A program made the translations under genes and the position numbers. Below are positions 3,044-60,522 of a stretch of 64,000 nt of DNA, one piece after another; position 1 is the first letter of the stretch, and every line of letters starts with the position of its first letter. The stretch lies in sequence record LR745206.1, one strand, 5' to 3'. The notes beneath the pieces are model-generated. The model saw only the letters and a list, made by a program, of their open reading frames with translations. It searched no databases and was not told where the DNA came from.

Positions 3044-4558
3044 TTATTTTTCTTTTCTTCCGTGGAATCTATGATTCTCGTTTATTCTTTCTATTTCTTT
3101 AAGGTAAATCTCTTTACCCTCTCCTAAAAATTCACTTAATTCTTTAACCTTGTCGAAATCACCTGCATCAAGTGCATCATCGATTAGACTTTGAATCTCT
3201 CTCTTTGATAATTGAGAATAATCTGATTCTCTTTCCATTGACTTTTGTCTCATTTCATCCTCGAATGAAAGTTCTTTTTCTTTCCCTGGTTCAACTGTAT
3301 CTCCTGATTCATCATCATTATATTCCTCTTCTGGCTCATTATAGTCAGAATTTGGTAAAGCTTCACCCAATTCATACTCATCTAGTGACTTTATTAACCC
3401 TTCAACCATCTCATTAACTTTTGTTCTAGCCTCTGGTGTTTCTAATAATATTTTCTTAACCAATGGTAAAAATTCATCTACTGGTAAAGCATGTAGCATA
3501 CCATAGAAATGCTCTCTTAGATTTGGGTATTTATCTATATCAGGAGCTTCATTAACGAAATCTCTTATATCTGCTGCTAGTTCAGGTCCATATCTAAATT
3601 CTTCTGCCTCATCATCCATTGATGATGTGTTCATCATTACCAACTCAGCAGTTCTTTTATCTTCTGGTATACCTGCCGCTGCTATTAATTCATAAATACC
3701 TTTTACTGTTTCGTGTAATAACATTGGAAAGTCAACACCTCTAGCTTTAATTATTGGATTTCCTGATGATAATAATTCTTGTATATCTTCATCTTCATTA
3801 TCTATATCAGCATCTTCATCTTCAAGTCCTTTTAGAACTTTGTCTGATAAATCCTCTTCTTCTTTAGCATCTGGCCATTTAACTGAACATGCTCCAGCCA
3901 TTCCTTCTGGTGCTTGCTCCATCATATCACCTTTAACATCAACTGGTATTAACCAATCCATTTTATCAGCTAATTCTGTCAACCTCATCCATATTCTATG
4001 TGCTTCTTCACCTTCTCTCTCACCAAGAATAGCTTTTAATTCATTCTTAACCTCAGGCATTGCTAATATCCTTTTTGTATTCTTAGCTTCTCCTTGTGTT
4101 ATATTGTTAATTATCTTTCTCTTATCAACTTCTTTTTTAATCTCTGGATCATTTAATAATTGGAAAGAAGGTGGTTCACAATCTTCACATTCTTCATCCA
4201 TAAAGTCTTTGACTGCTCCTGGTCTAACTATTTTAATATCCAAATCTACATTATCTAATATAGATCCATATTCTTGCATTATTATTCTTTCTGCTAATTC
4301 TTCTAAAGCATCTTCATTTCCTCTTACGAATTGCATAGATTGTTGCATTATCTCCATCATTTCCCTACCAACTTGCATAGTCTGTTGTGGACGACCTCTT
4401 CTAGGATCTTCTTCTCTTGGTACATTAAGTCTTTGTCTAGCTCTACGCTCAACATCACTTAGATATTTCTTCTCATCTCTATCAGAACCTTCACCAGGTA
4501 TACCTGAGCTACCTTTAAGAGATACTTCTTCATTCATAAAATCTTTGAAATTCTTCAT
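3044..4558 (-). CDS. acidic hypothetical protein, putative head-packaged
   Basis: 504-aa ORF starting MKNFKDFMNEE; LLHETVKGIYEL segment. Confidence 0.65.
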   Translation of the reverse strand: MKNFKDFMNEEVSLKGSSGIPGEGSDRDEKKYLSDVERRARQRLNVPREEDPRRGRPQQTMQVGREMMEIMQQSMQFVRGNEDALEELAERIIMQEYGSILDNVDLDIKIVRPGAVKDFMDEECEDCEPPSFQLLNDPEIKKEVDKRKIINNITQGEAKNTKRILAMPEVKNELKAILGEREGEEAHRIWMRLTELADKMDWLIPVDVKGDMMEQAPEGMAGACSVKWPDAKEEEDLSDKVLKGLEDEDADIDNEDEDIQELLSSGNPIIKARGVDFPMLLHETVKGIYELIAAAGIPEDKRTAELVMMNTSSMDDEAEEFRYGPELAADIRDFVNEAPDIDKYPNLREHFYGMLHALPVDEFLPLVKKILLETPEARTKVNEMVEGLIKSLDEYELGEALPNSDYNEPEEEYNDDESGDTVEPGKEKELSFEDEMRQKSMERESDYSQLSKREIQSLIDDALDAGDFDKVKELSEFLGEGKEIYLKEIERINENHRFHGRKEK

Positions 4559-4812
4559 TATTTATTGACATATTTTTTTATGTCTTCACCCTTATCATTA
4601 AGGAGACTTATGAATCTATCAACAACATCCTCAACGGTTGCCTTTGGTGCTGGATTTACTGATGGTTTATCTCTTCTTATTGGTGAAGGTCTACCAGGTC
4701 TTGTTCCTGGTTTCACACCAGGTGTTGTAGTAGGAGCTGGTTTAGTTTCAACTTCTTGACCACCCATCACAAATTCCTCATTGAATTTTTCAAACTTTTT
4801 TAGAAATCTCAT
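4558..4812 (-). CDS. Pro-rich small protein, putative head-packaged
   Basis: MRFLKKFEKFNEE start; late motif TTAATATATA on minus strand at 4837-4846. Confidence 0.7.
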   Translation of the reverse strand: MRFLKKFEKFNEEFVMGGQEVETKPAPTTTPGVKPGTRPGRPSPIRRDKPSVNPAPKATVEDVVDRFISLLNDKGEDIKKYVNK

Positions 4813-4836
4813 AAGATTAGTTATTTTTATATGATT

Positions 4837-4903
4837 TATATATTAAAATTATAATTCTATTTTTGTGATTATCTTAATTTATTACAATTGAATTTAATAT
4901 ATA
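4837..4903. promoter_or_regulatory. divergent pair of putative late promoters
   Basis: TTAATATATA on minus strand (4837-4846) and on plus strand (4894-4903), each just upstream of a start codon. Confidence 0.6.
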
Positions 4904-4908
4904 TCTAA

Positions 4909-5988
4909 ATGAAGTATATTAAACCATATAGTAATTTTTCTATAAATGAAGCGGTTGGTCTAGCTGAGGCTACACTCATCTATTCTGAATTTATACTAGA
5001 TAAAACAAAATTTTACTTTGATAAGTTTCTTAAAATTGGAGATAGAAAGTTCGAACAAAATAAATCTTATGATCTTTCAAAAAGAAATGATATCATTCTT
5101 AATGATTTGTGGGATAAATATCCTGTTTTGAAAATGAATATTACTTTTAATTTTGAAAAGCAAAGTGATGTTGATTTTAATGAAAGATTCCCAAAAACTT
5201 CTAAAATAAAGGGATTCACAACAACAGGAGCTTGCTATAATATAGTTGAGAATAGATCAAGAGATAAATCTTATCTATTACCAAATATAAACAAAAGAAC
5301 AAAGCATACAATTTTTTTAAAATTAGAAGTTGGTGGGATTATACGTGATAGTTTTGATGAAAACGAGGATTTCCTATTAGAAGTTGAGGGCGCTATAATA
5401 CATGAGTTAAATCATGCTTATGAGGGTTATATGAGGTTGATTAAAGGAAGTGGTCAAGTATCAACTGATTTAACATTCGCAACAGATAATAATCGAAGTA
5501 AAGTGAAGAATGAGATATGGAAAGTATGGAGGGATAAAATAGGATACTATCTATATACTAGTGAGAGACATGAGTTAAATGCCATGGCACAAGAAGCATT
5601 TCCTTATGTTAAGAAATATGATCCATCTGAGATGAGGAAAAAATGTCCATCTTGGAGAACCGCAGAAGAAATGTCTAAATTTAATGTTGTTGATTTTAAA
5701 AAAGAAATCACAAAAATGATAAATAAATATTACTCAGGTGTCTATCCAGAATTTATAGTTAGCATACTTAATAGACTAAAGAATGGGTTGGGTAATGAAT
5801 TAGGTGTTAATAGAGAAGAATCGGTTGATATGTTAGAAGATTCCCCTTCTTTGAATGGGCAAGAAATATATAATATGGATATAGATAGGTTTTTGTTATA
5901 TGTTCAAAAAAGGGTTAATAAGGCTGGTGATAATCTTAAAAAGAAAATAAATAGACTATACTCTATAAAAGATAAGGATTTAAAATGA
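4909..5988 (+). CDS. putative zinc metallopeptidase (HExxH), putative head-packaged
   Basis: IIHELNHAYE plus downstream ERHELNA; N-terminus MKYIKPYSNFSINE. Confidence 0.55.
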   Translation: MKYIKPYSNFSINEAVGLAEATLIYSEFILDKTKFYFDKFLKIGDRKFEQNKSYDLSKRNDIILNDLWDKYPVLKMNITFNFEKQSDVDFNERFPKTSKIKGFTTTGACYNIVENRSRDKSYLLPNINKRTKHTIFLKLEVGGIIRDSFDENEDFLLEVEGAIIHELNHAYEGYMRLIKGSGQVSTDLTFATDNNRSKVKNEIWKVWRDKIGYYLYTSERHELNAMAQEAFPYVKKYDPSEMRKKCPSWRTAEEMSKFNVVDFKKEITKMINKYYSGVYPEFIVSILNRLKNGLGNELGVNREESVDMLEDSPSLNGQEIYNMDIDRFLLYVQKRVNKAGDNLKKKINRLYSIKDKDLK

Positions 5989-6383
5989 GAAAATTTACTA
6001 AAATACTTGAAGAAATAGAAAATGGTAAATTCTATAAAGTTAATGCTGAGATAGAATTAATAATACCTGCTGATAATGAAGGTGAGGCTGGTTATTTATC
6101 TGACTCGATACTATCATCACTAGAGAATGGATCAAATTATCAAATTATCAATATTGATGAAACTGATGAAAGAATAACTGAGCACATGGAACTTTATAAA
6201 GGTAAACAAGGTCCTTTTCAAGAAGATAAAAAAACTCCAGAAGAAACTATTGAATTAACTTGGGAGGCTGAGTTCGGTGATAGTTTGCCTACTATGGATC
6301 AGAGAATGGAATTCTATCATGATATGAGAAAGGCTGGATATGATAGTCAATTGGTATTCAAAACCCTAAAAGGTAAATTTTGA
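5985..6383 (+). CDS. hypothetical protein, putative head-packaged
   Basis: MRKFTKILEE start; ATGA overlap with upstream stop. Confidence 0.65.
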   Translation: MRKFTKILEEIENGKFYKVNAEIELIIPADNEGEAGYLSDSILSSLENGSNYQIINIDETDERITEHMELYKGKQGPFQEDKKTPEETIELTWEAEFGDSLPTMDQRMEFYHDMRKAGYDSQLVFKTLKGKF

Positions 6384-6420
6384 TATTAATATATAATTAA
6401 GACAAAAACAAATTAAATAA

Positions 6421-6996
6421 ATGAAGAAGTTTTCAGATTTTGGTGGTAAAAAACCAGTTAAAAGAATAAATGAGGCTGATGAAACAGTAGATTTTCAACC
6501 TGTTTCGGGTCAAGATGGTGCTCCTGTTGTAGCTAACCTACCAGGAAATATACAAATGCCTGGTGAGGAACAAGAAGAAAAGGAACAAGAAGGAGAAATT
6601 GCTGGTACTGTTGAATCTACTGAATGTTCAAATTTCTTTTCTAAATTATTCGAAAGTAGAGAGATGGCTCATGTTTATCACTTACAAGTTAGGGGTGATG
6701 AAGGTTCTTATGCAAAACATATGGCTCTTGGTGGTTATTATGAAGGGGTTCTAGATTTTATTGATGAGATAATAGAAGTTTATCAAGGACAATATGGTAT
6801 CATTGATGGTTATGATATAATCGATACGAAAGATACTAAAACAAAAGATCCAGTTGCTTATTTTGAGGAGATGGCTGAATATATTAAAAATGCTAGAAAA
6901 TGTATTAATGAAGAAGATACACATTTACATAACATAGTTGATGAGATAGTAGCTCTTATTTATAAGACACTTTATAAATTAAAATTTAACAAATAA
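6421..6996 (+). CDS. ferritin/Dps-like four-helix protein (DUF5856-like)
   Basis: AHVYHLQ..SYAKHMALGGYYEGVLDFIDEIIEVYQGQYG pattern; late motif at 6386-6395. Confidence 0.6.
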   Translation: MKKFSDFGGKKPVKRINEADETVDFQPVSGQDGAPVVANLPGNIQMPGEEQEEKEQEGEIAGTVESTECSNFFSKLFESREMAHVYHLQVRGDEGSYAKHMALGGYYEGVLDFIDEIIEVYQGQYGIIDGYDIIDTKDTKTKDPVAYFEEMAEYIKNARKCINEEDTHLHNIVDEIVALIYKTLYKLKFNK

Positions 6997-6999
6997 TAA

Positions 7000-7026
7000 A
7001 AAACCCAACTTAATCAGTTGGGTTTT
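7000..7026. terminator. bidirectional intrinsic terminator
   Basis: AAAACCCAACT-TAATC-AGTTGGGTTTT between convergent genes. Confidence 0.75.
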
Positions 7027-7237
7027 CAATTTTAAATATATTTTCGATTTTTCGTTTCCTTATTAGATTTGTAGTTCTAACAAATCCATAATAACTATTA
7101 TTAACCATTTTTGTTGCATATCTACTCTTCATTGATAATGAATTGAAGCTACTTGATAATGTTGAAATACTTTCACTAACAACATAGGGCATCCAAACTA
7201 GACCAGCTTCCAATTTATTTGATTTCTTTCCCAACAT
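7010..7237 (-). CDS. small protein: major capsid C-terminal-like fragment plus RxxKIxxIF tag
   Basis: GKKSNKLEAGLVWMPYV..MKSRYA resembles gp23-family GYKGPNEMDAGIYYAPYV..FKTRYG; ends IRKRKIENIF. Confidence 0.7.
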   Translation of the reverse strand: MLGKKSNKLEAGLVWMPYVVSESISTLSSSFNSLSMKSRYATKMVNNSYYGFVRTTNLIRKRKIENIFKIENPTD

Positions 7238-7367
7238 TGAATATTTTTTCTATTTTTTCTTTCCTTATAAGTGGTCTGAACCAAAAATTTGGCATCCATA
7301 CGTCCCTACCATAGTTATTATTGGATGGTCCGAAAACTTTAATATTTGGATCTGGAGCTACAAACAT
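7215..7367 (-). CDS. 50-aa tagged micro-protein not in ORF track
   Basis: hand translation MFVAPDPNIKVFGPSNNNYGRDVWMPNFWFRPLIRKEKIEKIFNVGKEIK; fills the gap between co-oriented genes. Confidence 0.65.
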   Translation of the reverse strand: MFVAPDPNIKVFGPSNNNYGRDVWMPNFWFRPLIRKEKIEKIFNVGKEIK

Positions 7368-7388
7368 AACATTTATATAATATTTTTA

Positions 7389-7706
7389 TTATTTGTTTTC
7401 AGTGTATAAGTATTTTCTACCTTCATCATTATAATCCATTAAGTTATTTATGATAGTATCCGCTTTATCAATAGTATCATCTAAATTTTTCTTTATAACT
7501 TGTAAAGCAGCGATAGAATCATCTATTTGATCATTACCTTTTTTTGAATTATTCTTATAGTTATTTAATTCATTTATATATGATTCAGCCATCTTACTTT
7601 TATCTTCTATTGTGGAAGAGAAATCTCTTAGATCTTCAATTATTTCACCAACTCTTTCAGTAGAAATATTATTCTCATCATTTTCATATAGTCTTTTAAT
7701 TTTCAT
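7389..7706 (-). CDS. coiled-coil small protein, putative head-packaged
   Basis: MKIKRLYE start; heptad-rich. Confidence 0.65.
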   Translation of the reverse strand: MKIKRLYENDENNISTERVGEIIEDLRDFSSTIEDKSKMAESYINELNNYKNNSKKGNDQIDDSIAALQVIKKNLDDTIDKADTIINNLMDYNDEGRKYLYTENK

Positions 7707-7727
7707 ATGGATATGTAATTTTTATAT

Positions 7728-7743
7728 TTAATATATATATTAA
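7728..7743. promoter_or_regulatory. palindromic bidirectional late promoter
   Basis: perfect 16-bp palindrome TTAATATATATATTAA holding TTAATATATA on both strands between divergent starts 7706 and 7747. Confidence 0.6.
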
Positions 7744-7746
7744 GTT

Positions 7747-8424
7747 ATGAAAAGGAAGAATAAGCTAATTTTAGAATTCACGGAATTTAATCTACAAAGG
7801 TTTAATAGTGATTCAGTTGTTCCAGCAGCACCAAATGTTAATAATCCATCTTTATCAACAGATGGTATTAATAGACATGAAGATGGTATTAGACAAGCGA
7901 TGTCTAGAATTAATGATATTCTTTATAATTTAAAGGGTACAAATTCATATTCTCAATTGAGAAGTAAGTTAGCCCTAGAGGACCAGGATATACAAAGTCT
8001 TAAAATACTAAGAATGGTTAAATCAAATGTTAGTTATGATGTTTATTTAACATTAGTGGTTGATGGTGAGACATATTGGGGTAAAATTATTAACATAACT
8101 GGTATGGATCCTAAATTCGAATCAGAAATGTTTAAGGATTTTGATCTATATCAACCAAAAGAATGGGTTATTAAAATGAAAGGTCTTGTTATTAAGACTA
8201 TTAAGGCTTGGTTAAAACCTAAACCAGGTAATTATCAGTTATTGAATGATGAAGTTATATGTTATTCTGTTGATACTGGTAAACAATTAAGAATGGAAAA
8301 AGGTATTGAAGTTGAATTAATACGTTCTCATGATGATAAAATAATTGTTAAACATGAAGGTGAATATTATAATTTAGTTGGTGATAACTTTGTCTATTTC
8401 AATTGGTGGTTTGAATTAGTTTAA
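7747..8424 (+). CDS. hypothetical protein
   Basis: 225-aa ORF; N-terminus LILEFTEF resembles the targeting motif. Confidence 0.65.
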   Translation: MKRKNKLILEFTEFNLQRFNSDSVVPAAPNVNNPSLSTDGINRHEDGIRQAMSRINDILYNLKGTNSYSQLRSKLALEDQDIQSLKILRMVKSNVSYDVYLTLVVDGETYWGKIINITGMDPKFESEMFKDFDLYQPKEWVIKMKGLVIKTIKAWLKPKPGNYQLLNDEVICYSVDTGKQLRMEKGIEVELIRSHDDKIIVKHEGEYYNLVGDNFVYFNWWFELV

Positions 8425-8699
8425 ATATCCTTTATACACTTACCTATCAATTCACTTTTTTCTTCTAAAGTTATAATAATAGGGCTTATTTTATCAATAT
8501 CTAATAATTTACTATTTAAAGATACTTTTATTTCTGAATCAGTAGATGTGTTGTTTATATTAATATCATCAATCGTATATTGATTACCTGATTCATCTTC
8601 TACTATTATAGTTGTTTTAGAAAAAATATCATCCTCAAATATAAAATTCATCATCAGTATTTTACAATTGTCTATTTGTGATTTAGTAAATTTTGCCAT
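8421..8699 (-). CDS. hypothetical protein
   Basis: likely start MAKFTKSQ at 8699; the longer ORF overlaps the upstream gene. Confidence 0.55.
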   Translation of the reverse strand: MAKFTKSQIDNCKILMMNFIFEDDIFSKTTIIVEDESGNQYTIDDININNTSTDSEIKVSLNSKLLDIDKISPIIITLEEKSELIGKCIKDI

Positions 8700-8715: not shown

Positions 8716-10227
8716 TTACCATAAAAATACGTTTCCGATCGCAGCATTTCTACCAGAGTTGAAATTGTAAATTCTTATTTGTGTTGATGTTAGTAGTGTT
8801 ATGTTTGGGTTAATATTACCATCTTGACATTGAACAACAGCAATCGGTATATATCCTAGATTATGGTTAAATGTTGATCCAGATGAACTAGCTATATTAA
8901 ATGATGTTGTGTATCTATAATCTAATCCATTTTGTATTTCTACACCACCTCTACCAGTTATTGTATTAGCGTTGAATCCACCTATTGTTAGTCTATTACT
9001 ACTAGTTATTGGTGTTTTATCAAGAGTAATGTATGTACCACCGCTATCATAAACGCTAAAGTAGAATCTAGAGCTACCAGCAATACCTCCACCTAATAAA
9101 GAATAAAACTCGAAATCGGTAGCTGCTCCTGTTCTCATTTGGAACCTTTTCTTACCTCCTGTTACAAATGATAAATTATTACTTGATCCAGTATCTCTAA
9201 ATATACCTGTATTTGATGCTCCTATTTTCAATGATAAATCAGATATAATACCTGAGTTTTGTAAAAAAACAGTACCGGATGAGCTAACACTAATATCATA
9301 TCCTGATTGTAGAGCCATTGTGGTTGCTGTGTATAAAATCTTAACTAATCCAGAATTAGAAAAAGCCATTACGTTAGTACCAAGTCTATAAAAACCCATG
9401 TTGCTTTGACTTTGAAATGATATTGATGGTTGTGATCCAGATCCATTACCTGCTAAGAAATAAGGAGCTTTAAGTACAGCACTTGATCTTATTTCTCCAG
9501 TATCTAATACTAATTGTGGTGATGTTGGTACAGCTGGATTAGCATTTGGGCTATTTTCTAATATAAGTTGTCTTCCATCTCCACCATCATATGAATAAAT
9601 TCTTGAGGGTGCTCCAAAATTTTTGAAATTAAGAACAGTAACTATACCTGCTACACCACCAACTCCTGGAAGTGTACTACCACCTGAATTACCTGGTGGT
9701 GTATCAACAGTCATGTTGAATGTATAAGTTGGTTGTGTTACATTACTAGTTAATATACTACCAACTTGTGCTGTATTTTGTAATCTTGTTAGTGTTAATG
9801 TTCCAGAAGTTATATTTGTAGCATTTATATTAGTTATATTACTACCTATTCCATAAAAACCACCAGCTCCAGATGATCTTATATCACCATTCACGGTTAA
9901 CTTTTTATCAGGAGTTATTGTTGATATACCAACATTTGTTGCATTATCAAATATTAAACTGTTTTGTATAACATTTCCAGGCGCTACGAATTTAGGTACA
10001 TAATTTGGTGTTCCTGATCCAGAAACACTACTTGCGGATTCTGTTGAGAATGTTGTTCCAGTCCAAACATATGGTATACTAACATTTAAATCCCAAACAC
10101 GCATTCCTGGGTATTTATATGGTAAATTATCTTTATTTGTATAAAATTGACCAGGTCCAACAACAAGTCTATTATCAATAGCCTTAGCTATGTTTACCTC
10201 AAAATTATCTATTATTTGTATTGCCAT
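8716..10227 (-). CDS. tail fibre-like structural protein
   Basis: Gly/Ser/Thr-rich beta-strand composition; SGSGTPNYVPKF..NSLIFDNATNVGISTITPDKKLTVNGDI and ITSGTL repeats typical of fibres. Confidence 0.6.
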   Translation of the reverse strand: MAIQIIDNFEVNIAKAIDNRLVVGPGQFYTNKDNLPYKYPGMRVWDLNVSIPYVWTGTTFSTESASSVSGSGTPNYVPKFVAPGNVIQNSLIFDNATNVGISTITPDKKLTVNGDIRSSGAGGFYGIGSNITNINATNITSGTLTLTRLQNTAQVGSILTSNVTQPTYTFNMTVDTPPGNSGGSTLPGVGGVAGIVTVLNFKNFGAPSRIYSYDGGDGRQLILENSPNANPAVPTSPQLVLDTGEIRSSAVLKAPYFLAGNGSGSQPSISFQSQSNMGFYRLGTNVMAFSNSGLVKILYTATTMALQSGYDISVSSSGTVFLQNSGIISDLSLKIGASNTGIFRDTGSSNNLSFVTGGKKRFQMRTGAATDFEFYSLLGGGIAGSSRFYFSVYDSGGTYITLDKTPITSSNRLTIGGFNANTITGRGGVEIQNGLDYRYTTSFNIASSSGSTFNHNLGYIPIAVVQCQDGNINPNITLLTSTQIRIYNFNSGRNAAIGNVFLW

Positions 10228-10245
10228 AATCTATATATAAAATTT

Positions 10246-11748
10246 TTAATATTTGAATTGATAATTAACTGATGGTGGTCCAATTTGAGGAACACCATTC
10301 CATTGATAAACATAAAATTCTTTTGCCGCCCATAATCCTGATGGTGATGATAGAACTATTGGTGTGTATGAAAATGATCCAGAAGATGTATTTCCATATT
10401 CATCATATATATTTGATAATGTTCCATAATTAGAATCATATATAAAATATAAATTACCTGTTCCTATAACATCAATTGTTTTATCACCGAAAGATTCAAC
10501 CAATTTTGATAACCCAGCCAAACCAATACTATTCATTGTTAGGTTAGGACTAAATCCATAAAAATATGGATATATACCAGTTATTGTAGTACTTGCAGAT
10601 GCTATTTGCATTCCATCACCAAGTGTTACTTTAAATTCTGTACTTGTTGCTGTTATTGGTGATATAACAACACCACTTGAACTACCGGTTATTGTAACAT
10701 AAGATGTGTTTATTATAGGAGGATAAGCTCCTGGTATCATGTTACTTAATCCAGCAATTTGTGTATTTAATGTTTTTTTGTTTAATGTATATTGTAGGGT
10801 TGGTGTTGGATAAGTTCCAACCTCAGCATACCCAACTGAATAAACACCCGTTATTTCAATTGAACAAGTTGGTGGTAGATAATCATATATAACTCTTCTT
10901 AATGTTTCTGATAAAGGCATATTATTAAATGTATCACCATATAATATATCACCTATTTGAACAGGACATCTTCTACTATCAGCAAATTCTAATGAATATC
11001 CATTAACATTTGTTGGGGTTCCGTATATATCAAGTTCTGATCCGGTAACTCCAATATAATCTAGTGTTGGTAATTGTATAATATCCCATACCAATTCACC
11101 ATCCTCTATGAACAGTACTTTTTCATTTGATGCTGATAATCCACTTTCATCTATTGTAGGGAATATTATATTATTTACAATTACACTACCAGTATATCCA
11201 CTATTTATACTTTGAATATTAATGTTCCCTCCTAATAGAGATGGATTTACTACATCTAGTGATACTGATTGTGTACTTCCTGATATTAACTGACTTTGTA
11301 TATATGGTGATTTGGTGTGTAATGATAGATTTGTTCCAGCTATTATAGCAACTCTTGTTGATGTTTGACTTTGTGTATCTATTTTTGTATTGTATAGAAA
11401 TATATCAACATCACTAGTTAGTAAACTATCATTCATTATATTATCAAATTCGGTATAAGAATATGTTCCCGAATAAGCTCTTTTACCTAAATAAATTTTA
11501 CTTTTGATATCTCTATTTGATGGATTATTTGAATCTAATCCAACATATGATATAGATGATCCAGATGCAGTTGTTTGTTTAAATGGTACACTTGTCCATA
11601 AAGAAAAAACAGCATCTCTAACATCAACTGGGTTAACCAATTTATCTTTATTATCTTGTAGGTTATCCAAAATATTATCTAAATAATCCTGGATAGGATA
11701 ACTCGTAGCCTCTGTCGTAAGTCCTATATTAACACTAAATGTCATCAT
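10246..11748 (-). CDS. virion structural protein (paralogue of 11751-13328)
   Basis: shares DVRDA..PSNRDIK..GKR, NGYSLEF and PLSE.LR blocks with its neighbour; Thr/Ser-rich. Confidence 0.6.
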   Translation of the reverse strand: MMTFSVNIGLTTEATSYPIQDYLDNILDNLQDNKDKLVNPVDVRDAVFSLWTSVPFKQTTASGSSISYVGLDSNNPSNRDIKSKIYLGKRAYSGTYSYTEFDNIMNDSLLTSDVDIFLYNTKIDTQSQTSTRVAIIAGTNLSLHTKSPYIQSQLISGSTQSVSLDVVNPSLLGGNINIQSINSGYTGSVIVNNIIFPTIDESGLSASNEKVLFIEDGELVWDIIQLPTLDYIGVTGSELDIYGTPTNVNGYSLEFADSRRCPVQIGDILYGDTFNNMPLSETLRRVIYDYLPPTCSIEITGVYSVGYAEVGTYPTPTLQYTLNKKTLNTQIAGLSNMIPGAYPPIINTSYVTITGSSSGVVISPITATSTEFKVTLGDGMQIASASTTITGIYPYFYGFSPNLTMNSIGLAGLSKLVESFGDKTIDVIGTGNLYFIYDSNYGTLSNIYDEYGNTSSGSFSYTPIVLSSPSGLWAAKEFYVYQWNGVPQIGPPSVNYQFKY

Positions 11749-11750
11749 AA

Positions 11751-13328
11751 TTAAAATATAAATTCAAATTCTCCTGATCCTGTATAACTACTAGTCGCAG
11801 TTGTTCTCCAAACTTTAAATGGTCCTGTATAATCTGGATGTGTTATACTAGAATATGTAAATATGGAATACGTTGGTGAAATTGAACTATATAAAATAAA
11901 TCCATTAGGGTCTTTAATATATTGTATATCGGTTGTAAATGTACCTGGGTATATAAAGTATAAATATCCATTTCCGTTATAAGGAACAGAATATGAATGT
12001 GAAACTCCCATATAAGGTTCAATCAATTTCGGTGATCCGGTTGTTACTGTTTTTAATGTTGTTCCATTTATAGCTATTGTTGTGTCATAATCATAAAAAA
12101 TTGGATTTATAAATCCAATACTTTCGTCAGAACTGAATGAATATCCAGTTGGGAAAGAAAAACTAGTAGCACCTACAACTGTTGATACATATAAACTAAA
12201 ATTTAAAGTACCTAATCCACTGAATGTTGCATAATTAAATGTTGAAAATGTTGAACTTCCAGGTATTTCGCTAAATGATGCTCCATAATTAAATCTAGTA
12301 TCTGAGTTATTTTCTCTAAAAAAGAAATCGGATATATATTCGTTTTGATCTCTAGCATATGATGTTATTGACCAATCAAATCCTAATGATGGTGTTGTTC
12401 CTGCTTCAGCATATGTTGTTCCGGTTATTGGATTTGTTATACTTAACTCAAGAACTGGCTCTATATAAGGGTAAAGTATTTGTCTTAATACTTCACTTAA
12501 TGGCCAATCTTGACCAGCAAACGAACCTGTTGGAAATGATGCTCCTTGTGTTATACCACCAATTTCTTGTGGTACTAAACTAGTATCTACAAATTCCAAC
12601 GAGTATCCATTTAAATTAACTGGACTACCATATATGTTTGTTGGTGATCCAGGAGTTCCTATATCTGATATCGTTACTGTTGAATCATCCCACTTTAATG
12701 AACCATAAGGATATGTACCAAAATATCTTAATATTTTACCATTTGAGGCTGAAGCTGATGTTTCTGCTGATGTCGGGAATACTATTCCATTTATAGCAAC
12801 TCTACCGGTTGATGAGAATATATTTATATCACCACCAAATAAAGATGGATTTGTTAAATATAAATCAATTGCATCTCCCGTAGGATTCATAATAGATTCT
12901 AAATATGGTGCATATTGATGTAATGTTGAATCTGTTCCTGCTAAAATAGCAACTTTTGTTGAACTTTGTGATACACCATCTGGTTTTGTATTATAAAGGA
13001 ATATATCAGCATTTGAATTATTTAATAATGAATTATTCATTATGTCCAAATTACCAAAGCTTCTTTTACCAATTAAAATTCTTTGTTTAATATCCCTATT
13101 TGATGGGTCACCAGAATCTATACCGATATACTCATATGATGAGTATGTGGCTCCTGTTGTTACACGAAATGAGGAATTAGCCCAAGTTGTTAGAAACGCA
13201 TCTCTAACATCTCTTGGAGATATTAATTTTTGTGTGTTATTAGGTAATTCTTCTAATACACTAAAAATATCTGGTTTCCTTGTAGATTCGGTTATTTGAC
13301 CTACATTTATACTATAAGTAGAAGGCAT
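11751..13328 (-). CDS. virion structural protein (paralogue of 10246-11748)
   Basis: same shared blocks; late motif on minus strand at 13349-13358. Confidence 0.6.
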   Translation of the reverse strand: MPSTYSINVGQITESTRKPDIFSVLEELPNNTQKLISPRDVRDAFLTTWANSSFRVTTGATYSSYEYIGIDSGDPSNRDIKQRILIGKRSFGNLDIMNNSLLNNSNADIFLYNTKPDGVSQSSTKVAILAGTDSTLHQYAPYLESIMNPTGDAIDLYLTNPSLFGGDINIFSSTGRVAINGIVFPTSAETSASASNGKILRYFGTYPYGSLKWDDSTVTISDIGTPGSPTNIYGSPVNLNGYSLEFVDTSLVPQEIGGITQGASFPTGSFAGQDWPLSEVLRQILYPYIEPVLELSITNPITGTTYAEAGTTPSLGFDWSITSYARDQNEYISDFFFRENNSDTRFNYGASFSEIPGSSTFSTFNYATFSGLGTLNFSLYVSTVVGATSFSFPTGYSFSSDESIGFINPIFYDYDTTIAINGTTLKTVTTGSPKLIEPYMGVSHSYSVPYNGNGYLYFIYPGTFTTDIQYIKDPNGFILYSSISPTYSIFTYSSITHPDYTGPFKVWRTTATSSYTGSGEFEFIF

Positions 13329-13382: not shown

Positions 13383-13408
13383 AAATCCGATAATTACTTA
13401 TCGGATTT
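13383..13408 (-). terminator. intrinsic terminator
   Basis: AAATCCGATAA-TTAC-TTATCGGATTT hairpin with a T-tract on the minus strand. Confidence 0.7.
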
Positions 13409-13501
13409 AAAAATATTTTTTATTTTATCTTTTCTTATATCGTTCTTATAGATTGGTTCATATGAAAATTTTGGTAGACTTGTGAGTAATGGTAGTGGCA
13501 T
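13394..13501 (-). CDS. 35-aa tagged micro-protein not in ORF track
   Basis: MPLPLLTSLPKFSYEPIYKNDIRKDKIKNIFKSDK; TAATG stop/start overlap with upstream gene. Confidence 0.6.
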   Translation of the reverse strand: MPLPLLTSLPKFSYEPIYKNDIRKDKIKNIFKSDK

Positions 13502-17282: not shown

Positions 17283-17897
17283 ATGAAATACGAAAAACAA
17301 AATATTTACTTTATATCAGACTTCCACGTTGGTCACAAAAACGTATTGAAGTTTGATGGTCGTCCTTTTCAGGACACAGAGGAAATGCACACTGAGTTAA
17401 TCAAGAGATGGAACTCAGTTATTGGTGATGATGATATTGTTTATTACTTAGGTGATTTAGCATTTTGTCGAGATGAACTAGCGAAATGGTTCGCTTATTC
17501 ACTAAAAGGTAAAATACATTTCATAAAAGGAAACCATGACAAAATGAAAACTTTACGTAAGTTTGGTCGATGGGAGGAAATTTATGAATATGGTACAGAA
17601 ATTTTTATCAAGGATGATGATTTGAAAAGTGCTCGAGGAATGCACGGATATCAACAAATTATAATGTCACACTACCCAATCTTGAGTTGGAACAGAGTAC
17701 ACTATGGTAGTTGGCATTTACATGGTCATTGTCATGGTAGCTTGATGAAAAGTAACCAAGATTATTACAAAAGAAAGGTGATGGATGTTGGGTGTAACGT
17801 AATTGATTATACTCCAATTTCTTATGAGGAAGTAAAAGGTGTGATGGTTAAAAAAGGAATCATTTCTGTTGATCATCATGGTGATGCTGATATGTAA
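17283..17897 (+). CDS. calcineurin-like metallophosphoesterase
   Basis: SDFHVGH, LGD, GNHD, SHYP, HGHCH motifs. Confidence 0.9.
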   Translation: MKYEKQNIYFISDFHVGHKNVLKFDGRPFQDTEEMHTELIKRWNSVIGDDDIVYYLGDLAFCRDELAKWFAYSLKGKIHFIKGNHDKMKTLRKFGRWEEIYEYGTEIFIKDDDLKSARGMHGYQQIIMSHYPILSWNRVHYGSWHLHGHCHGSLMKSNQDYYKRKVMDVGCNVIDYTPISYEEVKGVMVKKGIISVDHHGDADM

Positions 17898-18055
17898 TGG
17901 ATAAAAGTTGGATAAAAATATCAATTAATAGCTACTACGGTACTTATAATTCTGGTAAATCAAACTTTGATATGAAACCACTTTGGGTTAAATATCGTAG
18001 TGGTAAAAGGAAGTCAAAGATAAAAAATATATGGAAGATAGATGGGATGTTATAA
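17897..18055 (+). CDS. 52-aa tagged micro-protein with PolB motif-B-like segment, not in ORF track
   Basis: MDKSWIKISINSYYGTYNSGKSNFDMKPLWVKYRSGKRKSKIKNIWKIDGML; TAATG coupling. Confidence 0.6.
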   Translation: MDKSWIKISINSYYGTYNSGKSNFDMKPLWVKYRSGKRKSKIKNIWKIDGML

Positions 18056-18363
18056 ATGTTGTTTGTATAAAGGGATATAAAACATTGAAAGTTGGTTCCT
18101 CTTATCAGATAAAGGGTCGTGGAAATCTAACATATAATGCTGATCCAGAAGTTGGTGGTAAAAAAGGTCAAGGATATTGTATAGAGGATGGTATGTATGG
18201 GTCTTATAGTGGTAGAACCGATTGGTACCGATTGCCTTATAATGAAAGGATTAAGTGGTATTATTTTACCGAAAAAGAAATGGGTGATTACTTTATAACA
18301 GATAATGAAAATCATATAATATATTTAAGAGATAGAAAAATTAATAGTATAATAAATGATTGA
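18031..18363 (+). CDS. tagged hypothetical protein
   Basis: ends YLRDRKINSIIND. Confidence 0.7.
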   Translation: MEDRWDVINVVCIKGYKTLKVGSSYQIKGRGNLTYNADPEVGGKKGQGYCIEDGMYGSYSGRTDWYRLPYNERIKWYYFTEKEMGDYFITDNENHIIYLRDRKINSIIND

Positions 18364-43406: not shown

Positions 43407-43880
43407 ATGACTCAAAGTTCTAAAGAAGATATTTTTAAAAAATGGGCACCTATTATAGAATCTATGGGTGTTACTGGATCAAAAGCAGATTGGATGTCTC
43501 ATTATGCTGAAATGCACTCTATCAATGAGAATAATATACAAATATCATCAACACAATCTACTTCTAATTTTCCAAATTTGTTACCAATCGCTAAAAAGAT
43601 TGCAGCTCAAACAGTTGGACTAAATTTAGTAGCTGTTAAACCAATTGGTGGTAATTCAACTGATGAGTTAGAAAGAATAAAAAGTGAGATTAAATCTGAA
43701 AACCGCGATAGAAAAATCGATTCTATTACAGATGATAAAGAATTTGAGGAAATGAAGGTTGAGGATCATCCAGACTATGAAACTGGTTTACCTAGTGGTA
43801 AATTATTTTACATGGATTATCAATATGGATCTACACCAACACATAAGAAGACAAGAAGAAGTAAAAAGAAGAAGAAATGA
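43407..43880 (+). CDS. major capsid N-terminal-like fragment with internal tag
   Basis: MTQSSKEDIFKKWAPIIE versus T4 gp23 MTIKTKAELLNKWKPLLE; LVAVKPIGG..PSGKLFYMDYQYG; NRDRKIDSI inserted. Confidence 0.75.
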   Translation: MTQSSKEDIFKKWAPIIESMGVTGSKADWMSHYAEMHSINENNIQISSTQSTSNFPNLLPIAKKIAAQTVGLNLVAVKPIGGNSTDELERIKSEIKSENRDRKIDSITDDKEFEEMKVEDHPDYETGLPSGKLFYMDYQYGSTPTHKKTRRSKKKKK

Positions 43881-44131
43881 AGAAACTTAAAATGCAAAAA
43901 GATTATTGGTTTCCTAGTCCAGATTATGTTAATAGATTTGGTCGTAAAAGAAGTATTGCTAAAATATTTGACCTTGAGTATGACGAATCTGATTTAGTAA
44001 ATTCCTCACAAATTCATTGGAGTAGTACCACTGCTCAACCAAGAATGAAATTTGTAATACCTATTGGTGATATGAAAGATAAACCAAGTATTGCTAAAAG
44101 AATCAAGGATTTGATAAAAAAATTCAAATAA
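43877..44131 (+). CDS. portal-like fragments flanking a tag
   Basis: QKDYWFPS, GRKRSIAKIF, RMKFVIPIGDM..KDLIKKFK. Confidence 0.6.
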   Translation: MKKLKMQKDYWFPSPDYVNRFGRKRSIAKIFDLEYDESDLVNSSQIHWSSTTAQPRMKFVIPIGDMKDKPSIAKRIKDLIKKFK

Positions 44132-59297: not shown

Positions 59298-59524
59298 AAG
59301 AATATAAAGTAATTAACTGTGGTGATTATTATGTTGTTAGATATGATAATTTCAACCATGGATATGGTAATGATAGAAAATATAGAACATATGAACAGGC
59401 TATGTCTGATATTTATAGATATTATAAAGATATAAAAACTGTGGATTATGAGTCAAAGTCGGAGCGAGAAGCTCGTATTCTATCCGAAAAGAGAAATAGT
59501 GTAATTGATAAAATTTTAGGATAA
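59294..59524 (+). CDS. tagged hypothetical protein
   Basis: ends KRNSVIDKILG. Confidence 0.65.
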   Translation: MKEYKVINCGDYYVVRYDNFNHGYGNDRKYRTYEQAMSDIYRYYKDIKTVDYESKSEREARILSEKRNSVIDKILG

Positions 59525-60078
59525 TGCTTTGGTATCATTGGGTCATTGGTTTTTCTATAGCGTTATCCCTTTTATCGGTTATATTATCTATACCATCAAT
59601 TATAACTATTTATAGAATTGGTTTAAAAGACTATGTTAGAAACATAAAACTACTTTATAATCTTAGAAAAAGGCTAAGTCTATGTTATCAACTAAATACC
59701 AATAGAACTTATAATTATCAAGTTAATGGAAGTTCTGTAAAAACCACAAATCAGATAGACATTGATTATTATTTTCCAATATATCTTAATGATAAAAATG
59801 TTGTTATTGTTAATAAGAGAGGTAAAGGTTTGTGGTATAACCTAATAATAAATGATGCGAGTTATGATGGTAAGGATTGGGTAACTAATATTATTGAAAT
59901 AAAAACATCTACTTGTATGCTAACACAAATTCTTAATGATAGATTTCAATCAAAATTAGATAAATTTACAAAGAACAAAATTTTATTAGAGGATATTAAA
60001 GATTTAAATGAATTAATTAATAGTGAGATAGTGAGTATTAGAAGAGATAGTAAATTAAATTTATTAATAAATGAATAG
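59524..60078 (+). CDS. membrane-anchored tagged protein
   Basis: N-terminal hydrophobic helix; ends RRDSKLNLLINE. Confidence 0.65.
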   Translation: MLWYHWVIGFSIALSLLSVILSIPSIITIYRIGLKDYVRNIKLLYNLRKRLSLCYQLNTNRTYNYQVNGSSVKTTNQIDIDYYFPIYLNDKNVVIVNKRGKGLWYNLIINDASYDGKDWVTNIIEIKTSTCMLTQILNDRFQSKLDKFTKNKILLEDIKDLNELINSEIVSIRRDSKLNLLINE

Positions 60079-60196
60079 TTATAATTGGTTAATGGGTAAC
60101 TTACAAGCTGCTTTAAGAGCAGCCAGACCTAATATGAAATCAAAGGTGAGGAAGAATAAAATAAAAAAACTATTATATGAACTTATCGGAAATTAG
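60071..60196 (+). CDS. 41-aa tagged micro-protein not in ORF track
   Basis: MNSYNWLMGNLQAALRAARPNMKSKVRKNKIKKLLYELIGN; fills operon gap. Confidence 0.6.
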   Translation: MNSYNWLMGNLQAALRAARPNMKSKVRKNKIKKLLYELIGN

Positions 60197-60380
60197 AACT
60201 TATGATTATGATAGAAAATCACCGAATGTGTTTTATATTTTAGATTATCCAAATTTGATAAAAATTAATGAGTTAACTAAAGAAAAGCGTGATATTATAA
60301 ATAAAATGAGTAATAACATTAGGTTTTTAAGAATACGTATGAATCGTAGAAATAAAATAAATAGAATTTTTGAAAAATAA
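60177..60380 (+). CDS. tagged hypothetical protein
   Basis: ends NRRNKINRIFEK. Confidence 0.65.
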   Translation: MNLSEIRTYDYDRKSPNVFYILDYPNLIKINELTKEKRDIINKMSNNIRFLRIRMNRRNKINRIFEK

Positions 60381-60522
60381 ACAAATCATATTACTTAAAG
60401 CTAGACAAACTGGTAAATCTTATTCTACATTGCATGAAATGATTAGGAGATACAAGGAAGTTGATACCGAAATGAGAAGAGCATTTAGAATACAAAGTGT
60501 AAAAAAGATATTTAATATATAA
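60370..60522 (+). CDS. 50-aa terminase Walker-A-like fragment plus degenerate tag, not in ORF track
   Basis: TTG start; MKNKQIILLKARQTGKSYSTLHEMIRRYKEVDTEMRRAFRIQSVKKIFNI. Confidence 0.6.
   Translation: MKNKQIILLKARQTGKSYSTLHEMIRRYKEVDTEMRRAFRIQSVKKIFNI

Follow-up and report, generated by a model that had tools for sequence, protein, structure and literature searches.

Introduction

In phage T4, the Gol peptide, which comes from the N-terminal third of the major capsid protein (MCP) gp23, activates the host suicide protease Lit and harms the phage. Folded proteins of demonstrated activity interfere with capsids in other systems, including CpmB of Staphylococcus aureus pathogenicity islands (SaPIs), Ccm of phage-inducible chromosomal islands (PICIs), Sid of P4, and the Gag-derived Fv1. 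Short terminal peptides are also known to direct proteins to shells of the HK97 fold, such as the cargo-loading peptides of encapsulins, the T4 capsid-targeting sequence, and the C-terminal helix of the P22 scaffolding protein. To our knowledge, peptide-scale interference by capsid-derived fragments has not been described for phages, and in the literature on capsid fragments or decoys in huge phages we found no description of mini-proteins of the kind reported here. We analyzed a 64,000-nucleotide stretch of LR745206.1 (positions 248,001–312,000, hereafter the window; no N, G+C 28.8%), an unannotated record of 634,780 bp deposited as an “uncultured phage,” and describe in it a mini-gene, open reading frame (ORF) B, that joins the C-terminal module of a gp23-type MCP to a short helical tag. 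We infer that LR745206.1 is the 634-kb genome of the huge-phage (Mahaphage) study. According to that study, the largest genomes fall within the Mahaphage clade and have predicted Bacteroidetes hosts (PMC7162821).

Residues 2–58 of ORF B are colinear with T4 gp23 (family PF07068) from residues 439–479 onward and keep the most conserved residues of the family, but ORF B amounts to only ~10% of such a protein, is without the N-arm, E-loop, spine helix, and A-domain, and has a foreign helix added. Like Gol, it is a short gp23-type stretch, which in the case of Gol is active as an isolated peptide; unlike Gol, which is not separately encoded, ORF B is a dedicated, conserved phage gene and corresponds to the opposite end of the protein. 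It resembles the capsid-interference proteins in being a derivative or mimic of a structural protein that, as we propose, may disturb the capsid assembly of another virus, but differs from them in being a phage-encoded 57-residue fragment plus tag. The tag recalls the targeting peptides in that it is a short, terminal, helical peptide, both basic and hydrophobic, found on many unrelated proteins of a virus with an HK97-fold capsid; however, it has no sequence similarity to them, and the genes that carry its motif avoid the structural region. ORF B and its two parts are as follows.

7010..7237, minus strand: ORF B, a mini-gene made of an MCP C-terminal module and a helix tag (from the ORF listing, homologues in the equivalent slot, and the ratio of nonsynonymous to synonymous substitution rates, dN/dS)
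7064..7234, minus strand: MCP-like part, ORF B residues 2–58 (from Pfam, an MCP hidden Markov model (HMM), BLASTP, and a PDB profile match)
7034..7066, minus strand: tag LIRKRKIENIF, ORF B residues 58–68, a predicted amphipathic basic helix (from conservation and an AlphaFold2 helix)

Homology of ORF B to the MCP C-terminus

ORF B encodes 75 aa, from an ATG start to a TAA stop (MLGKKSNKLEAGLVWMPYVVSESISTLSSSFNSLSMKSRYATKMVNNSYYGFVRTTNLIRKRKIENIFKIENPTD). Profile and pairwise searches confirmed that, by similarity, its residues 2–58 are homologous to the C-terminal ~57 residues of gp23-family MCPs (HK97 fold) and align with them colinearly. The Pfam family PF07068 (Gp23) matched ORF B with an E-value of 2.2e-4 and 21.2 bits, which is under the gathering score of 24.4, and residues 4–52 aligned to profile positions 308–356 of 376, a one-to-one match of 49 residues to 49 positions. 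ORF B does not cover the profile as a whole, and the remainder of the HK97-type fold (~450–650 aa) is absent. A local HMM built from 12 full-length MCPs matched ORF B at positions 521–578 of 587 (E 2e-12). In BLASTP comparisons, ORF B was 37% identical over 46 aa to the C-terminus of the phage's own MCP (E 1e-7), with an alignment that stopped before the last strand, and 39% identical over 59 aa to P0151, a metagenomic MCP (E 3e-11), with an alignment that ran up to the natural end of P0151. The homology is secure despite the sub-threshold Pfam score because the profile, MCP HMM, BLASTP, and PDB matches all support it.

A profile built from six ORF B-family proteins yielded 329 matches at E≤1e-3 among 1.84 billion representative proteins, including dozens of proteins of 56–90 aa with a like layout as well as the last 55–60 residues of gp23-type MCPs of 487–646 aa (E 1e-7 to 1e-5). 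The best PDB matches of this profile were T4 gp23 chains (6uzc_a residues 439–479, E 0.016; alignment KGPNEMDAGIYYAPYV..FKTRYG), whereas a PDB search with the single ORF B sequence gave no match, so that T4 gp23 was reached by the family profile only. A sequence-only reading of this locus had proposed an MCP C-terminal fragment fused to the tag, and the Pfam, MCP HMM, BLASTP, and family-profile results bear this out, the fusion being in frame and the tag a recurring one; the two strings it quoted are both found in ORF B, and the T4 gp23 alignment is the one it had drawn by eye. Its description of the fragment as compressed, in contrast, fails against the one-to-one PF07068 alignment. T4 gp23 extends ~42 residues beyond the aligned point, and ORF B seems compressed only relative to T4 for this reason, not relative to the gp23 family; colinearity up to the natural C-terminus was verified with two MCPs, P0151 and that of the cultured Flavobacterium phage immuto. 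The sequence-only reading was also right that the product is too short to build a capsid: at 75 aa, ORF B covers those profile positions alone, comprises only ~10% of an MCP, and cannot be a capsid subunit. The phage has a separate, complete MCP.

ORF B as a selected gene in a variable cassette

ORF B lies with a second, overlapping minus-strand mini-ORF (ORF A) between a DUF5856 gene (6421..6996, plus strand) and a coiled-coil gene (7389..7706, minus strand), and only ~380 nt separate these flanking genes. The further features of the locus are listed below.

7215..7367, minus strand: ORF A, a 50-aa tagged mini-ORF (..VWMP..LIRKEKIEKIF) that shares 23 nt with the beginning of ORF B, which is in the +1 frame
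7389..7706, minus strand: coiled-coil gene, 105 aa, conserved, directly upstream of ORF A/B (from synteny in L001–L005 and L019–L021, the loci compared)
6999..7027, no strand assigned: hairpin terminator with a 12-bp stem followed by a T run, common to ORF B and the convergent DUF5856 gene (from a terminator scan)

The comparisons show ORF B to be what its sequence marks as a genuine, selected protein-coding mini-gene of a huge-phage clade, because homologues occupy the syntenic slot, dN/dS is 0.26–0.49 (0.09–0.19 for ORF A), the MCP signature residues are invariant, and a terminator follows the gene. In the slot, three tail-fibre-like genes come first, followed by a gene of 227 aa, the 105-aa coiled-coil gene, ORF A where present, ORF B, and the convergent DUF5856 gene; contigs of 25, 42, 355, and 640 kb have an ORF B homologue in this position. 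A profile search of 5.8 billion proteins identified 77 small homologues (63–112 aa, E≤1e-3), several of them on contigs of 150–640 kb. Four of the first five small homologues carry precomputed PF07068 matches, as do most close homologues. In 31 sequences of ~45–65% identity, G12, P17, Y18, and K37-S38-R39-Y40, which are the signature of real MCPs, were invariant or nearly so, as were the tag residues R60, K61, K63, I64, I67, and F68.

ORF A and ORF B end in a common pattern, (L)IRK-x-KIE-x-IF. Their overlap is identical in L002 and L003 and is 14 nt in L019, and ORF A is absent from L005 and L021. We discarded the idea that ORF A is itself an MCP piece, as its likeness is by eye only and it gave no significant match to the MCP HMM. 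The coiled-coil gene (dN/dS ~0.05; no family assignment) precedes ORF A/B in all relatives carrying them and probably belongs to the same transcription unit. The ORF B stop codon falls in the loop of the terminator hairpin. L002, L003, L005, and L021 retain the hairpin DNA, even in places where their reading frame is a different one. The last five residues of ORF B, ENPTD, are encoded inside the terminator stem, and L003 reads the equivalent DNA in another frame; ENPTD is a by-product of the terminator DNA.

These data bear on whether ORF B is non-functional debris, namely a capsid-gene piece that a fast-turnover gene family acquired through recombination and whose frame has stayed open by chance or because neighbouring signals constrain it. 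ORFans and gene fragments are numerous in huge-phage genomes, the mini-ORFs sit in intergenic-like positions and often form overlapping tandem arrays, and the terminator dictates the C-terminal ENPTD. Neutral evolution and loss of frame, however, are not what we found: the frame is open with a conserved start in homologues down to ~30% identity, dN/dS is below 0.5, the MCP signature is nearly invariant, and tags located in mid-protein keep the frame, with MCP-like sequence resuming after them. We consider debris very unlikely.

The cassette has diverged unevenly from its surroundings. Between the window and L002, the flanking genes showed dN of 0.004–0.013 and dS of 0.16–0.23, whereas ORF B showed dN of 0.35 and dS of 0.80 and ORF A dS of 1.4, indicating that the cassette was either exchanged or diverged far faster than the near-identical flanks. 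In the related 642-kb phage LR756502.1 (L001), the ORF A/B cassette is absent at the equivalent locus. With respect to window positions 3044–7367, this relative passes directly from a 641-aa gene to the 105-aa coiled-coil gene; the block that it does not have comprises a gene for a 504-aa acidic protein, several small genes, the DUF5856 gene, and ORF A/B. Layouts in the ORF B family vary as well: the tag may be terminal, may lie in the loop that separates the two strands, or may occupy both sites, ORF A is not always present, and some forms are truncated. In the loop-tag subfamily, FRKSKIRRLLG takes the place of this loop of the MCP, and the C-terminal end resembles that of a natural MCP; another subfamily carries a tag at each of the two sites. 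By hhalign (probability 98.6%), the subfamilies are clearly homologous.

Relation to the phage's own MCP

All six-frame ORFs of the whole of LR745206.1 were searched with the HMM of 12 full-length MCPs. The phage has a sole full MCP gene, at genome positions 200,752–202,434 (MCP HMM E 9e-164; Pfam Gp23 E 1.8e-26, positions 6–350), which lies ~53 kb upstream of ORF B, outside the window, and is intact with a complete C-terminus. The sequence-only reading had seen no adjacent full MCP gene of which ORF B could be a frameshifted remnant, and the genome-wide search agrees. Given this distant and complete MCP, the 37% identity, and the unaligned last strand, we ruled out that ORF B is what remains of an adjacent MCP gene or was recently copied from the own MCP end. 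As for duplication mechanisms, no near-identical copy of the kind expected of a template/variable repeat of a diversity-generating retroelement was found (37% aa identity; tblastn finds no other match in the genome), although nearby reverse transcriptases were not searched for, and exon duplication by an intron or endonuclease was not indicated by any Rfam match in 6000–8500 or by endonuclease domains in the neighbouring ORFs. Together, the comparisons show ORF B to be a domesticated copy of the C-terminal ~57 residues of a gp23-type MCP.

The last strand of ORF B (RYATKMVNNSYYGFVRTTNL) is identical at 17 of 20 positions to that of P0151 (RYATKMVNNRFYGYVRVDNV), whereas the own MCP has RYAVAEVGWFPQKQFMTINV there. 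In the database, P0151 is closest to the MCPs of Flavobacterium phage immuto, a Microcystis phage, and other huge phages, and the immuto and huge-phage MCPs share its clade.

The tag as a genome-wide C-terminal motif

The strict tag pattern occurred 7 times in the six-frame translation of the window, compared with 0.94 times in dinucleotide shuffles (maximum 4), and 32 times in all six-frame ORFs of the genome, with 22 of the 32 within 12 residues of the stop of ORFs of 30–87 aa. The peptide takes forms such as LIRKRKIENIFKI and the IRDKKIDDIL type. Of 911 likely genes, 96 had a looser motif, [RK]-x-x-[KR]-[IL]-x-x-[ILV]-[hydrophobic] (consensus about (I/L)RDxKIxxIL), no more than 12 residues from the C-terminus, against ~7 expected from its overall frequency and 3.3 in shuffled tails. 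The tag is thus not private to ORF B and represents a variant of a C-terminal motif on ~10% of the predicted proteins. This proportion points to a common docking, sorting, or turnover system. Genes with the motif are short (median 114 aa) and are small ORFans; ten of their products were given no Pfam assignment. They are commonest at the genome ends; the 150–200 kb bin, where the terminase gene lies and the scaffold gene begins, has 0 of 52, and the 200–250 kb bin, with the MCP gene, has 4 of 57. Examples in the window are found at 18031..18363 (..YLRDRKINSIIND) and 59524..60078 (..IRRDSKLNLLINE). A derivation of the tag from the C-terminal end of the MCP spine helix was tried and gave no signal.

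Might the tag merely look like a peptide and instead be a DNA- or RNA-level element, such as a promoter, a translation-initiation region, a terminator module, or a structured RNA? The tag DNA of ORF A ends 1 nt before the ORF B ATG, ~22 nt of it survives upstream of ORF B in L005, which is without ORF A, and the tag at 18008–18034 overlaps the start of the next gene. However, the tag of ORF B is followed by a terminator and a convergent gene, and for motif-bearing genes in general, a convergent gene comes next in 21% and the downstream gene is adjacent in 58%, versus a background of 48%, so that a role as promoter or translation-initiation region of the next gene is unsupported by gene-order statistics. 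The T4 late-promoter motif (TATAAATA) was not enriched, a scan for sigma-70-like promoters stayed at background level, and window positions 6000–8500 gave no Rfam match, on which ground we set aside a structured RNA at the ORF B locus. Furthermore, the differences between orthologous tags are mostly third-position changes or fall in the one variable codon, which varies as a whole, the substitutions being synonymous or conservative (I/L, K/R), and five of the six MCP-like fragments that were found independently of the tag carry it in frame. A nucleic-acid element is, in our estimation, extremely unlikely.

The distribution of the motif also bears on a role in the phage's own head, in which ORF B would be an assembly factor or a minor capsid or cargo protein whose strands add to the lattice while the helix targets the capsid or scaffold. 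A short C-terminal peptide on ~100 proteins is what a packaging signal would be expected to look like, the MCP contact residues of ORF B are conserved, the gene adjoins tail-fibre-like genes, the loop-tag subfamily is strongly conserved, and most of the fragments found in the genome derive from proteins of head morphogenesis (repeatedly the MCP, also the scaffold, and weakly the portal). Conversely, motif-bearing proteins are depleted in the structural region, as the empty 150–200 kb bin illustrates, and enriched at the genome ends; ORF B outpaces its neighbours in divergence and is absent from the related 642-kb phage; and its last strand does not track the own MCP. We regard an own-head role as doubtful, while giving it some weight.

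Other genes built from pieces of the MCP and other hallmark proteins

Further tagged mini-genes in the window and elsewhere in the genome carry pieces of the MCP or of other proteins. Those with listed coordinates are the following.

43407..43880, plus strand: 157-aa gene with an MCP N-terminal part (local MCP HMM positions 7–131, E 2e-13)
17897..18055, plus strand: 52-aa tagged mini-ORF (..KISINSYYGTY..GKRKSKIKNIW), matched by the ORF B family profile in a whole-genome search (E 4.8e-4)
60071..60196, 60177..60380, and 60370..60522, plus strand: three overlapping tandem tagged mini-ORFs (array 60071..60522)
Genome 440,173–440,361 (L014 31173–31361): g440158, 62 aa, MCP spine helix (MCP HMM positions 349–380) followed by RRKNSINKIF

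In the 157-aa product, a 45-aa insert with the tag-like NRDRKIDSI separates two MCP segments. The next ORF (43877–44131, plus strand; 84 aa) has an internal GRKRSIAKIF. The 52-aa mini-ORF at 17.9 kb had no significant match to the MCP HMM and is possibly, to judge from the family-profile match, a copy of the last MCP strand plus tag. A PolB motif B in it was considered and dropped: KxxxNSxYG also matches ORF B, so that a copy of the ORF B tail is the simpler explanation.

The Pfam match of g440158 covers Gp23 positions 164–194. Its spine-helix family has 98 homologues of 52–79 aa (loci L023–L026; dN/dS 0.2–0.5), often located at the end of a gene cluster, and some members are on T4-like contigs of 180–230 kb, amid replication, nucleotide-metabolism, or glycosyltransferase genes. 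Another mini-gene, g222206, combines MCP HMM positions 317–349 (Pfam Gp23 positions 132–163) with IRKESINKIF. Divergent MCP-like sequence was detected in g104947 (104,947–105,336, plus strand, 130 aa; HMM positions about 460–522) and g207176 (207,176–207,904, plus strand, 243 aa; positions 460–522, or about 351–557 overall), which end in the loose C-terminal motifs RDLKIESIL and RDIKIDTLL, respectively.

Pieces of other proteins bear the tag as well. One tagged mini-ORF contains repeats of a scaffold/prohead-protease-like 707-aa protein (E 2e-36), the gene for which is just upstream of the MCP gene. This mini-ORF is one of two that overlap at genome positions 460,438–460,834 (minus strand, L015); the second has EGDIYYNT..W, which we took to resemble a tail-fibre N-terminus. 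A tagged mini-ORF at 83,136–83,390 (plus strand, L007) matches the PolB motif A region, with DFASLYPSTQR compared with DFASLYPTTQR in the own PolB (E 0.0085). The third tandem mini-ORF of the window has ARQTGKS, like a terminase Walker A; RQxGK[ST] occurs elsewhere in the genome only in the Walker A of a terminase-like 710-aa ORF (178,254–180,383), and we treat this motif-level match as a lead. A weak match of a tagged mini-ORF to the portal C-terminus (Pfam E 0.048) is likewise a lead only.

Known host sensors recognize the MCP (Lit and CapRel) and the terminase and portal (Avs), the protein classes to which the fragments found here belong, so that tagged pieces of hallmark proteins could be decoys or antagonists that fill such sensors without activating them and blunt abortive infection. 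The spine-helix genes of the 180-kb T4-like contigs, amid replication and nucleotide-metabolism genes, are outside the structural module, and their product could for that reason be made before the real MCP; the fast evolution of the ORF A/B cassette and its presence or absence among relatives would fit too. A decoy should nevertheless mimic the own MCP, from which the last strand of ORF B differs. Moreover, known sensors bind folded domains, whereas the fragment is predicted to be unstructured alone; PADLOC found no linked defence-like partner; and in one system a free MCP peptide triggers rather than blocks the response (Gol with Lit). Evasion of host sensors thus strikes us as questionable, though credible enough to keep in view.

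Taken as a set, the mini-proteins could also form a genome-wide “bait library,” in which dozens of them show pieces of hallmark proteins on a common docking helix that is read by one receptor, for example an unfoldase or protease, a membrane site, or the capsid interior. The pieces so far are the MCP N-terminal part, the pre-spine strand, the spine helix, the C-terminal hairpin, scaffold repeats, and PolB motif A, and perhaps the portal C-terminus and Walker A. The phage might thereby capture, mislocalize, or destroy either the corresponding rival-phage proteins or the host sensors that respond to them. The MCP pieces at HMM positions 317–349, 349–380, and 521–578 presumably make up together the P-domain of the HK97 fold, and the three might reassemble via their helices into a split P-domain mimic. 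We judge such a library unlikely.

Predicted structure and possible function of ORF B

An AlphaFold2 model of ORF B made from the 31-sequence alignment had a mean predicted local distance difference test score (pLDDT) of 63, and its one confident element was a helix at residues 55–68, corresponding to the tag (pLDDT ~86). The MCP-like part had no secondary structure in the model (pLDDT ~55–63), and a second AlphaFold2 model, of the loop-tag subfamily, was also of low confidence (mean pLDDT 62). With no fold predicted for it alone, the MCP-like part would suit a peptide that becomes ordered only on a partner.

Among the possible functions, we rank first, and tentatively, molecular mimicry in conflict, in which ORF B would be a dominant-negative cap or poison on the gp23-type capsid lattices of co-infecting phages. 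ORF B might be an interaction mimic that occupies the surfaces normally receiving the two C-terminal strands of a capsid subunit; we propose this because the MCP-like part is not predicted to fold alone and yet keeps the MCP invariants (G-x-V-x-x-P-Y and K-S-R-Y-A). The appended helix could then either prevent the subunit contact from being completed or tether the complex to a common receptor of the tag, and the purpose would be the capping of rival phages' lattices. We favour a role in conflict because the cassette evolves far faster than its flanks and because the last strand is nearer to the MCPs of other phages; the presence of the cassette in some relatives and absence from others and its variable architecture also fit a conflict gene. 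The sequence-only reading had considered a decoy or poison subunit more plausible than a structural role; the data are compatible with a poison, a decoy, and a part in the phage's own head assembly alike.

Several points weigh against capping of rival lattices. The affinity of the whole fragment is ambiguous, at 32.7 bits with the C-terminal HMM of the own MCP type versus 41.1 bits with that of the other type, and clade-specific HMMs score other members of the ORF B family toward either MCP clade. Accordingly, the comparison with own and foreign MCPs suggested in the sequence-only reading gave a divided answer, with the last strand nearer to P0151 and the fragment as a whole following no consistent clade. 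The loop-tag subfamily is highly conserved (84% mean column identity), which suits housekeeping better than an arms race, and the dN/dS range of ORF B was computed from only ~45 synonymous sites. A peptide that caps rival lattices might cap the phage's own lattice too. One mechanism may not fit the whole set of mini-proteins, because PolB motif A and a Walker A loop are not assembly interfaces, and the tag may be uninformative on capsids because it is also on ~100 unrelated proteins.

If mimicry is true, huge phages would have made small weapons or shields from parts of their most conserved structural protein. Whatever the mechanism, at least two widespread unannotated families of 52–112 aa are built from MCP pieces, one of which reaches T4-like phages of 180–230 kb, and in one of the largest known phages, ~10% of the proteins bear one short C-terminal helix motif. 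Partial Gp23 matches on tiny metagenomic ORFs should not be discarded as truncated gene calls.

Neighbouring genes and a further tagged mini-ORF

Searches of the neighbours and the motif-bearing proteins with Pfam, PHROGs, and PADLOC returned nothing useful beyond DUF5856. The DUF5856 protein (6421–6996, plus strand; Pfam E 2e-19) corresponds to PHROG 858, “starvation-inducible transcriptional regulator,” and the length of its N-terminal region varies among relatives. Three consecutive genes of 500–525 aa occupy 8716–13328 (minus strand). A counterpart of one of them in related contigs has a Peptidase_S74 domain (tail-fibre intramolecular chaperone), and the three are for this reason likely a fibre module adjoining ORF A/B. 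The window contains one more tagged mini-ORF.

13394..13501, minus strand: 35-aa tagged mini-ORF (..DIRKDKIKNIFKSDK) with a hairpin after it

The own PolB is seemingly split, with motif A in a 515-aa ORF (232,797–234,341, plus strand) and motif C (YGDTDS) in a 476-aa ORF ~100 kb off on the opposite strand (130,571–131,998, minus strand).

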